Below, in pieces: positions 28,701-31,700 of a stretch of 64,000 nucleotides of DNA (position 1 is its first letter; each line of letters starts with the position of its first letter). The DNA is taken from contig OZ037769.1 of the NCBI GenBank assembly GCA_964035545.1, positions 6,491,929 through 6,555,928 on the forward strand, read 5' to 3'. The translations under genes were made by a program, and so were the position numbers. Source of the DNA: Bugula neritina. Taxonomy: Eukaryota; Animalia; Bryozoa. A model generated the notes under the pieces. The model had not been told where the DNA came from, ran no database searches, and saw only the letters and a program-made list of their open reading frames with translations.

Positions 28701-31700
28701 TATAAATAACTGCCTAGTCCTCTAGTCCTTGTCACAACATAACCTGTCAAAACAATAAGCGCTTTAACTAGCCTGCCAATACATGTTAACTGCTTCTGGT
28801 ATTTTGTCACTGAAAACACGAACACACAAGTTTGTTTAGGCCACTAAAATCTTTCATTTTATTCAGCTAAAATCTGCAAATTCTGAGCACCAAGTAAAAG
28901 TTGCTCAACCACAATATCTAAACTAGCTCTGTTGTGTGCTTGAATACAAAATATAATTACGTTGTAGCATATTCCTTACGGCCGCCCTTGGTATGCCAGA
29001 AGCCTTGATTCCCGTGCAGCTGCTGTGGGTGAACCTGGTCACCGATGGCCTGCCAGCCACTGCTCTTAGCTTCAACCCGCCTGACCTTGACATCATGGAC
29101 AAGCAGCCCCGGGACCCTAAGGAAGGCCTCATCACCGGCTGGCTGTTCTTCAGATACATGGCTATTGGCAGTAAGTTGTCCCCCCAACTCTGTGTTTCTT
29201 AAATTTTCTTAGTTTGTCTGAAATTTTATGGCTGCCAATTCTGTGTACTGGAGTTTTGCTCTCTTTCCTTAAGATTTTTGTTAAGCAAGTCATAAAAATT
29301 GCTTTATTCAATTCAGAGATATAGTGTGTTAATTTAATAGACTCTTTGTTGTTTTGACCAAACAGTTCTTTTATCTGCATAGTGTTGAATGTTGCAGTTT
29401 ACGTCGGTGCTGCCACAGTTGGAGCTGCTGCCTGGTGGTTTATGTCCGCACCTGATGGACCACACCTCAACTACTATCAACTGGTACAGCTACTGTGCAA
29501 TTCTCTCTCTTGTTCATAGTGACTAGTTCATATATTTGATCTGCTGAGCTGATAACATTCTGTATTATACCCACTGTTTTTAAATGTCATACTGTTTTAT
29601 TATTGTACAATGAATATGTTTCCCACTGCCATGTTTACATGTTCCAATACCTGCTGGCTGCTATTACAGACACATCATATGCAATGTTTGGGGGAACCAG
29701 AAAATTTCGCTGGAGTAAGTTGTGAGGTTTTCCAAGCACCTGAGCCTATGACAATGGCCTTGTCTGTTTTGGTTGTCATTGAGATGCTTAATGCACTCAA
29801 CAGGTAAACATGTGCCATTGGTTGAGGCAGCGCTGCCTTGGCTAGCTAGCTGATTGGTTGAGACACTAATATGAGTATATAATTTTTAAATTGATTTGCA
29901 GTAGCAGTTCTTAGCACAAATTAATCTATTAAACAGCTTTCAGCCAATCGCTAGCTAGACATTACTGGTGTAAGTTTTCATACACTTACTAGTGGGTTAT
30001 ACTGAGTTCCTACTTGAGTGCTGTGAAACCTTACACCGTCCCTCAAAACATGCCAGCTTTCACTGATGTGATTACTGATTCCACACTATTGTCTTTGTTT
30101 AGACCCACCACTCGCAATGTTTAGCTCAGGCAGCAAATTTCTCTGGTGTTGATTGCAAAGTTTTTGACAGTGATATACCCCATGCGTTGGCATTGTCGGT
30201 ATTGGTTACAGTGGAGATGCTGAACGCGTTGAATAGGTATGATCACACGCTACCAGCCACCCTTCATCCCTCTCCGTAGTCATTCGGAGTTGTTAGCCTT
30301 TTCACGCTGGACACTCAGTACTAACTAGTAACAGCTAGCACTAGTATTAACAACTGTCCTTTTCCATGCTGCCAGTTGGCACTGCTTGCCCTGCAATGCT
30401 CCATTAAGCAGACAAAAAAGTGTTCCTAGTGACTAGATGATGTAGTGACCAGATGGTGTCACGCTGTAGTAGAGGTTTTCTTAGCACATCTCTCTGCTGT
30501 CCTCTCTTTCTAGTTTCAGTTGCTTCTAACATTAGCTCTACCTGTTGAGATGCACTGAATGTGTGAATGTTGTCTTTCTGTTCATAGTGTAGAATTTTAG
30601 ACCTGCGACGTGTGTAAAGGTTGATTGTGTGGATATGAAGATCAGTTTTAGCTGTTCATGTGACATTCTAAGTCTATCCTTTCTGTCCTGGCTAGTCAGT
30701 TTGTTATATTTTGTGCTATACTTGGTCTGAAAGCAGCTGCTGCATGCTTGACTAGATAGTTTGACGGTTTTCCAAAGTTAGAAGGTGTGTAGGCCATTAA
30801 TCTTTCATAGCGAGTTGTATTCCAAAATTCCTCCTAGTGGGTATTAAGTTTAGAAATTAGTCGACTATATTGACCTGTCACAGCATGTGTGGTGTTGTAA
30901 TAGCGACCTGCCTGAGCTAAGCAAGTATACATGCGTCACGCTGGCGCGCTGCTGAGACTGCTGCTGGTGGTGGGATCTTGGCAAGTTGGTGTTTTTCTTT
31001 TTTGTTTTTATACTTGAATTAATCGCATGCTACTTATTAAATACATTAAAATTCCATTTTCTGCTAAATGTTCTTGTGGTAACTTCAAGCAATTTATTTA
31101 TAGCGCACTGCGCCACTAACTAACTTCATTTGTATATATATAAACCATCTACAAATGTACTAATTGTAATATTGGTTGATCAACGGCCAATGTATTTTCA
31201 TGCAAACTGAACTTTTTTATAAAAATTAAATCTTGGGCAGTCTTTCATGCTGCTTGATGTGTTTGCAGTCTGAGTGAGAATCAGTCTCTGCTTTCCATGC
31301 CTCCGTGGGTGAACCCGTGGCTCGTAGGAGCAGTTGCCCTCTCAATGGCTCTCCACTTCATGATTCTACACGTACCCTTTTTGTCTGTAAGTAGTTTATT
31401 ATACATATCTATCTACATGTCCGTTTTAAGTTGCGGTCCATCTACCAAGCATGAGTTCTCAATCTTCCAAGTCTAGGCGAGATTTACAAATGGCGTGTGA
31501 TAGCAACTAGAGAGTTGCCTACTCATCGGTGTATGGCTTAAATGGGGTAAAAGAGCAAAAAGAATATACTTATGACAATCCACGTTCAAAGCACTTGGTG
31601 TTCTATATTATTCATTTTATTATATTTTTAATAAGGTTTTGAACACTGTAAGTTGCTCTTTCATTATATTAAAATGTGCTGCTCACTTTCATTTGCTGAG

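Follow-up and report, generated by a model that had tools for sequence, protein, structure and literature searches.

The means by which cells include one exon of a pair or the other have been solved for few genes, and comprise short spacers, incompatible splice sites, pairing between docking and selector sequences, and nonsense-mediated decay (NMD). Here, we analyze two tandem exons, A and B, of a SERCA-type Ca2+-ATPase gene in a 64-kb stretch of the genome of the bryozoan Bugula neritina (hereafter the window), together with the 299-nt spacer intron that lies between them. We find that the spacer intron contains RNA hairpins that are real and biased towards the transcribed strand. Tentatively, we read these hairpins as an auxiliary, lineage-specific structural brake on the joining of A to B, for which the reading frame and NMD would serve as a backstop. 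The two exons code for the luminal L7-8 loop and helix M8 of the pump; M8 carries a Ca2+-site glutamate, and the splice choice between A and B probably tunes a central ion pump. We found no paper in the literature on mutually exclusive SERCA exons of this kind. If the reading is true, an ordinary-length, recurrently folded spacer whose fold is kept as its sequence turns over would be a further route to exclusivity. If the hairpins are neutral, the case shows how far thermodynamic and substitution-pattern tests can mislead.

Several described systems come close to this locus. For exon 17 of insect Dscam, Yue et al. (2013, RNA Biol) are said to have described steric hindrance combined with RNA secondary structures. 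Like the SERCA locus, that gene reportedly has a two-exon cluster in which spacing and local structures shape the exclusive choice, and its structures vary by lineage. The Dscam structures are said to mask or bridge splice sites, whereas the SERCA stems lie wholly inside the spacer and leave the donor uncovered, with only a weak terminal helix touching the pyrimidine tract. In yeast RP51B and in zipper stems, pairing within an intron brings the 5' splice site and the branch point together. As with zipper stems (PMC11802352), the SERCA intron has two complementary stretches, one closely following the donor and the other closely preceding the branch region. Zipper stems promote the removal of their own intron, whereas removal of the SERCA spacer leads to an out-of-frame mRNA, so the sign would be reversed here or the purpose a different one.

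Exons 2/3 of alpha-tropomyosin and exons 4a/4b of OGDH are, like A and B, tandem duplicated exons, and the idea is that in them the upstream donor and the downstream branch point cannot be jointly occupied if they lie too close to each other. In OGDH, exclusion is steric and the branch points are inside a stable hairpin (PMC7969005); the proposed vertebrate threshold is ~50 nt from donor to branch point (PMC7969005). The SERCA locus differs in that the linear distance from donor to branch point is ~260 nt and the branch-point candidates are at the usual 25-37 nt from the acceptor, so that closeness would need RNA folding. Competition of selector sequences for a docking site has been described for Dscam exon 6, 14-3-3 zeta and srp, together with an evolutionary model (PMC6071210), and for ATE1 (PMC7797038). 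These systems also use RNA pairing in introns around duplicated exclusive exons, but the SERCA pairing is purely intra-intronic. Lastly, exclusivity can be enforced by the reading frame and NMD, as surveyed for human mutually exclusive exons (PMC5740500). The SERCA locus resembles such cases in its 134-nt exons and in the stops that arise on co-inclusion or double skipping; it differs in that frame enforcement needs no RNA structure and leaves the excess of structure in the spacer unexplained.

The SERCA-type gene spans ~9 kb of the plus strand (~22900-31930 of the window). Below, z denotes the z-score of the minimum free energy (MFE) of folding against dinucleotide-shuffled sequences. Key z values were obtained with 100-200 shuffles; those computed by script used 15-60 and are noisy (at 15-20 shuffles, one control window scored -4.9 with 20 shuffles and -2.5 with 200). 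L017 denotes a sibling taxon, 90.5% identical to the window over 12 kb. The exons, the spacer intron and the elements within it are as follows.

29670-29803, plus strand: exon A, 134 nt, the canonical-looking copy (THHMQC...), with donor CAG/GTAAAC; found in all eight lineages described below.
29804-30102, plus strand: spacer intron between exons A and B, 299 nt, analyzed by folding and genome BLAST.
29825-29838, plus strand: perfect 14-nt palindrome AGGCAGCGCTGCCT, a small hairpin; weak when folded alone (z = -1.7) and unchanged in L017.
29842-29958, plus strand: hairpin 1, a 21-bp basal stem (29842-29863 with 29938-29958) enclosing a 74-nt AT-rich interior; z = -4.28.
29966-30038, plus strand: hairpin 2, 28 bp (29966-29996 with 30009-30038) including 4 G-U pairs, with a 12-nt loop; -32.2 kcal/mol.
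30039-30102, plus strand: 3' tail, with CTGAT branch-point candidates at 30063-30067 and 30075-30079, a pyrimidine tract and AG; assigned by motif and pairing probability.
30103-30236, plus strand: exon B, 134 nt, the divergent copy (THHSQCLAQ...), with donor TAG/GTATGA; B-type orthologues occur in relatives.

The palindrome, both stems and the CTGAT motifs had been reported in an initial annotation of this DNA, and each lies where it was placed. The annotation also held that folding takes out ~190 of the 299 nt, which agrees with the 190 nt covered by hairpins 1 and 2 together, and that several deviations from perfect pairing are compatible with G-U pairs. The latter is borne out by the six G-U pairs and zero A-C mismatches of the two main stems; two of these G-U pairs are in the stem of hairpin 1, which also has one bulged U. 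Against dinucleotide shuffles, the comparison that the annotation had named, the intron is exceptionally stable: its MFE is -90.2 kcal/mol versus -69.4 +/- 4.9 for 200 shuffles, none of which is as stable (z = -4.26). Hairpin 2 alone scores -5.84 on the sense strand and -2.21 on the antisense strand. The first 10 nt of the 3' tail are predicted to be unpaired (pairing probability 0.10), and the remainder to be partly paired (0.34-0.58). Among 299-nt windows across the 9-kb gene, only the spacer intron and one tandem-repeat stretch have z < -3, and the spacer intron is in the top 1.5% of the whole 64-kb window by GC-corrected MFE.

Two sets of observations stand beside these folds. A tandem repeat in a SERCA intron (25605-25903) contains repeated open reading frames (ORFs) of the YYGILCYT... 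type, scores z ~ -5, as strong as the spacer intron, and is matched in several registers by L017. Furthermore, the consensus 5' splice-site hexamer GTAAGT occurs at 29970-29975, where it is base-paired in the 5' arm of hairpin 2, and again inside exon A at 29715-29720; the real donors, GTAAAC and GTATGA, are weaker than either hexamer.

Exons A and B are true duplicates. Both are open, and both encode two luminal cysteines and an EMLNALN motif; across 44 codons, 10 are identical, 17 differ synonymously only and 17 change the amino acid. A third, degenerate copy was sought inside the 29804-30102 spacer and none was found; there are two copies only. In silico, the upstream exon joined to either A or B and then to the downstream exon gives an open frame. 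Joining A to B leads to a stop codon 7 codons into B, and skipping both leads to a stop just past the junction. It is because each exon is 134 nt, a length that is not a multiple of three, that transcripts with both exons or neither carry premature stops. Exon B is 137 nt in two lineages (L018:1227-1363 and L043:894-1030), with one extra codon after CLAQ/CIAQ and a phase unchanged relative to 134 nt. The reading frame is thus a hard guarantee of one-or-other mRNAs, and transcripts with A plus B or with neither presumably decay. Throughout, we infer exon usage from sequence.

We searched relatives for exons A and B separately, the matches being ORF-like fragments on genomic contigs of other animals, and found the same exon pair in eight lineages. 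In every lineage, the A copy begins with THHMQC and the B copy with THH(S/A)QC or THQAQC, from which we conclude that the duplication is old. No alignment of the spacer introns is possible across lineages, and their lengths vary from 212 to 696 nt, which makes them too long for ordinary steric exclusion. In four of the eight lineages, the spacer has an exceptionally stable sense-strand fold (z from -2.75 to about -4.5), and the sequences that form these folds are unrelated. All four show a bias of sense over antisense, as given here with the window and its sibling taxon side by side.

Spacer of the window: sense z -4.26, antisense z -2.84.
Spacer of L017, the sibling of the window: sense z -4.82, antisense z -3.91.
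Spacer of the L018 group: sense z -4.47, antisense z -1.20.
Spacer of L013: sense z -2.97, antisense z -0.73.
Spacer of L022: sense z -2.75, antisense z -0.13 (the antisense value from 30 shuffles).

Structure is thus frequent in this intron but dispensable across lineages. About 1-2 of ~112 control windows reach z <= -2.75, and the matched upstream introns score from 0 to +2.2 (seven sequences); the low structure of the latter may reflect selection against structure in short constitutive introns.

The structured domains also have a position in common. Of the first six lineages, five have a helix of at least 15 bp that stops 61-68 nt short of the exon B acceptor, with an unpaired stretch after it; the sixth, L023, has a 12-bp helix that ends at 56 nt without such a stretch. 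Across these six lineages, mean pairing probability is 0.80 and 0.76 in the two bins that cover -80 to -61, and falls to 0.31 at -60 to -51. It also peaks at +31 to +60, the positional arrangement of a zipper or bridging stem. The 3' boundary pattern of a helix followed by an unpaired stretch was not seen in upstream introns. The structure of the L018 group is a single 200-nt long-range stem, not two hairpins.

Comparison with L017 provides a closer view of how the unit evolves. Exons A and B have zero nucleotide differences between the window and L017, even at synonymous positions, while the 12-kb average is 8.5%. The blocks 29650-29849 and 30039-30400 have two and four differences, respectively, and the constitutive upstream exon ~5 per 100 nt. 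This near-zero divergence of the exons and their flanks is in keeping with regulated alternative exons. Conservation is also especially high over the 163 nt that follow exon B. Within the intron, the hairpin region is 12.7% diverged versus 0-2% for the exons and their immediate flanks. Hairpin 1 carries two broken and two conserved pair changes in L017, and its interior is 26% diverged; hairpin 2 is kept as 26 bp, and the 3' tail has two differences in 64 nt.

We then asked how stable the intron would be had the same changes fallen elsewhere. The changes that separate the window from L017 (25 substitutions and 4 indel positions) were re-placed at random and the resulting sequences refolded. 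The L017 intron has an MFE of -95.5 kcal/mol versus -74.5 +/- 5.3 for randomly mutated copies of the window, none of which is as stable (0/250). In the reverse direction, 2/250 are as stable, and local placement within +/-12 nt gives 0.009 and 0.018. The corresponding values are 0.036 and 0/110 for L018 and L019, where the larger indels of the L018 group are all within the loop, and 0/110 in both directions for L013 and L024. In control introns that lack large indels, the values were 0.16-0.39; windows with large insertions, being biased in this test, were left out of the count. L013 and L024 have three helices in common, all intra-intronic, one of which has two double compensatory changes. 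Together, this provides moderate evidence, from sequence comparison, that evolution in three clades has preserved structure. Since related species keep such folds with different sequences, selection on the fold is probable.

We propose that the spacer contains a lineage-specific, selectively maintained RNA domain (in the window, the palindrome and the two long hairpins) that would start ~20-40 nt past the A donor and end ~60 nt before the B acceptor. This domain would lower the chance of the A donor joining the nearby B acceptor, an event that would be kinetically favoured and whose product is out of frame. It may do so by holding the donor and acceptor sites rigidly and closely together. Alternatively, it may place a stem against the region where the U2 small nuclear ribonucleoprotein must anchor upstream of the B branch point, and a stem does adjoin that region. 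During transcription, the B acceptor becomes available to the A donor ~1.2 kb earlier than the productive acceptor does, and this early exposure means that a brake on A-to-B joining would be useful. We infer folding in vivo, an action on splicing and the direction of that action.

Physical closeness is a plausible way of keeping duplicated exons apart in this genome, given the short spacers of two other exon pairs: ~57 nt in the pair encoding an RFX DNA-binding domain and 27 nt in the pair encoding a Pax2/5/8 paired domain.

G000:C1:28443674-28444102 (L035) and L034:4880-5320 (minus strand): the RFX and Pax2/5/8 exon pairs; the Pax spacer is too short for an intron.

Scans of the PDE, PTP and nAChR families produced no clean further exon pair for comparison. 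At G000:C5:2138459-2139449, downstream of a complete tyrosine-phosphatase domain, the same part of that domain (profile positions 184-233) is matched twice on one strand, with the two matches ~700 nt apart; they may be another duplicated pair of alternative exons.

Linear closeness is not what the SERCA spacer offers: at 299 nt here and 212-696 nt in relatives, it is neither unspliceably short nor does it bring donor and branch point to within ~50 nt. The arrangement of alpha-tropomyosin and OGDH, a distant branch point with a long AG-free tract, is not present; across lineages, branch-point candidates are 25-48 nt from the acceptor and the AG-free zone measures 32-79 nt. The initial annotation had suggested that folding brings the exon A donor too close to the branch point, and in this specific form the idea is not supported. 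The analogy with pairing between docking and selector sequences, as in Dscam, also fails. An ungapped helix scan with G-U pairs allowed, run for upstream by spacer, spacer by downstream, and upstream by downstream introns in six lineages, found no cross-intron complementarity beyond chance (best z from -1.2 to +2.2), and no pairing partner recurs between the window and L017. Competing cross-exon pairings show no conservation or covariation; the spacers are unalignable, and the helices shared by L013 and L024 are intra-intronic.

A number of results weigh against the brake. Shuffled introns shorten the predicted graph path from 5' splice site to branch point about as much as the real introns do, and ensemble paths do not discriminate between them; through pairs with probability >= 0.8, the path takes 21-37 steps in structured lineages and ~140 in L023 and L024. 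The single-stranded distance around the stable stems, counted from the helices, is ~35-67 nt, which is not clearly < ~50 nt, a threshold that is moreover a vertebrate one and may not hold for bryozoans. Pairing within an intron is in general held to activate splicing, since it draws the sites together (PMC11802352). Both exons are intact but excess structure is absent in four lineages (L023, z = +0.5; L024, -1.0; L041, 0.0; L043, +1.2). Two of these, L041 (696-nt spacer) and L043 (532 nt), were fetched after the pattern had been stated, as a test of it, and neither is structured. Exon length by itself already leaves transcripts with both exons or neither out of frame. In the comparison of the window with L017, change is about as frequent at paired positions (16/184) as at unpaired ones (13/115), and the changes comprise 8 disrupted pairs, 7 conserved one-sided changes and 0 double compensatory changes. 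Finally, strand-biased mutation in transcribed DNA, or template switching from arm to arm, could mimic part of the G-U bias and of the stability signal.

The RNA-level selection put forward in the initial annotation gains support from these comparisons, in that four of eight lineages are structured and three sister pairs preserve stability. Of the covariation for which it looked to orthologous introns, we saw two double compensatory changes in one helix of L013 and L024 and none between the window and L017; the lineages cannot be aligned. We regard as doubtful the broader notion of a "virtual short intron", by which in bryozoans, and perhaps other lophotrochozoans, long spacers would be collapsed by stable, fast-evolving stems, such that donor and branch region act as though too close, the sequence turning over while the fold is selected.

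That the hairpins are neutral is an explanation we hold to be rather unlikely. They would then be local inverted duplications, template-switch products or decayed foldback insertions, tolerated because no productive mRNA involves excision of this intron as a single unit, and exclusivity would come from frame, NMD and splice-site competition. Half of the lineages lack excess structure and the frame alone explains exclusivity. Hairpin sequence is not shared from one lineage to another, within the A-intron-B unit it is the hairpin region that diverges most from L017, its stems carry as many disruptive as conservative single changes, and the long arms in L018 and L022 resemble foldback elements. 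Neutrality does not readily account for structure in four of eight lineages where neighbouring intron windows have a base rate of ~2%, for the sense-over-antisense bias in all four of these, for real orthologues in three clades being much more stable than randomly mutated copies, or for the common 3' boundary of the structured domain.

An insertion origin also finds little trace in this genome. BLAST of the spacer intron against the whole 216-Mb genome returned only the self-match, which upholds the initial annotation in that the intron does not belong to a dispersed family of miniature inverted-repeat transposable elements (MITEs). The stem 2 pattern, with <= 3 mismatches, has 4 other matches genome-wide versus 7 for a control pattern; the stem 1 pattern has 5 other matches, whose common part is a CCAAT-like core only. 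A MITE or foldback transposon family is ruled out by the single copy and the lack of dispersed stem copies, except that the search skips very common words and an old, strongly diverged family could escape it. Inverted arms are present, but the bases that flank either hairpin have no repeat that would mark a target-site duplication.

The fold could also be selected for another splicing job than blocking A-to-B joining, which we consider improbable. It might be a zipper or bridging stem that speeds a step of splicing, or a regulated stem by the B branch point that sets the use of B versus A. The geometry is that of known activating pairings (PMC11802352), with one arm, on the 5' side, closely following the donor and the other, on the 3' side, directly preceding the branch region. 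Between the end of the stem and the candidate branch points downstream of it lie 13-28 nt, and, as expected of a regulated exon, exon B is ultraconserved between the sibling taxa together with its flanks. Faster removal of the spacer intron, however, would raise out-of-frame A plus B and is unlikely to be favoured unless it serves down-regulation, and neither a conserved protein-binding motif nor an alternative pairing partner came to light.

It is very unlikely that one or both hairpins are a small-RNA precursor (microRNA-like) or another structured non-coding RNA hosted by the intron. Hairpin 2 has the size of a precursor microRNA (73 nt, 28 bp, -32.2 kcal/mol), its 5' arm (29966-29987) is unchanged in L017, and its stability is kept between the sibling taxa. 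Its 3' arm has several changes in L017, however, and the hairpin sequence is absent from the next closest lineage, the L018 group with its single 200-nt stem, and from all more distant lineages. There is no paralogue in the genome, and Rfam has no family match at E <= 1, except for a chance-level match to a small nucleolar RNA (snoRNA) inside exon A. An H/ACA or C/D snoRNA was rejected as a candidate on inspection of the two hairpins: an ANANNA-like hinge is present, but the lower stems are much longer than they should be, a pocket is lacking, 11 nt separate the ACA from the stem, and the arrangement lacks conservation.

Least probable of all is that the inverted repeat of hairpin 1 acts in DNA, with inverted CCAAT boxes (NF-Y sites) forming an intronic enhancer or an internal promoter and the RNA hairpin arising as a by-product: the inner arms of hairpin 1, CTGATTGGTTGA and AGCCAATCG, both fit the CCAAT-box consensus, and the core GCTGATTGGTTGAG occurs at five other genome loci versus 0 for the reversed control pattern, but one of three motifs is mutated in L017, and hairpin 2, the sense bias and the structured introns of other lineages, which have no paired CCAAT motifs, would be left unexplained. 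The three CCAAT-box-like motifs lie at 29817-29829, 29853-29865 and 29942-29952, and two of them are the inner arms of hairpin 1.

The remaining parts of the gene around the exon pair are the following.

29382-29483, plus strand: constitutive upstream SERCA exon, ending ...LNYYQL; assigned from the ORF list, translation and tblastn anchoring in relatives.
29484-29669, plus strand: upstream intron, 186 nt, without excess structure (z = +1.5).
30237-30400, plus strand: conserved start of the 1032-nt downstream intron, with TACTAAC at 30319-30325; ~2% diverged from L017 versus the 8.5% average, and not unusually structured (z = -1.7).
31269-31385, plus strand: constitutive downstream exon, found also in relatives.

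Beyond the SERCA gene, homeodomain-like ORF pieces on the minus strand of the window (35174-35308 and 35674-35820) point to a homeobox gene that would lie directly downstream of SERCA and be read from the opposite strand.

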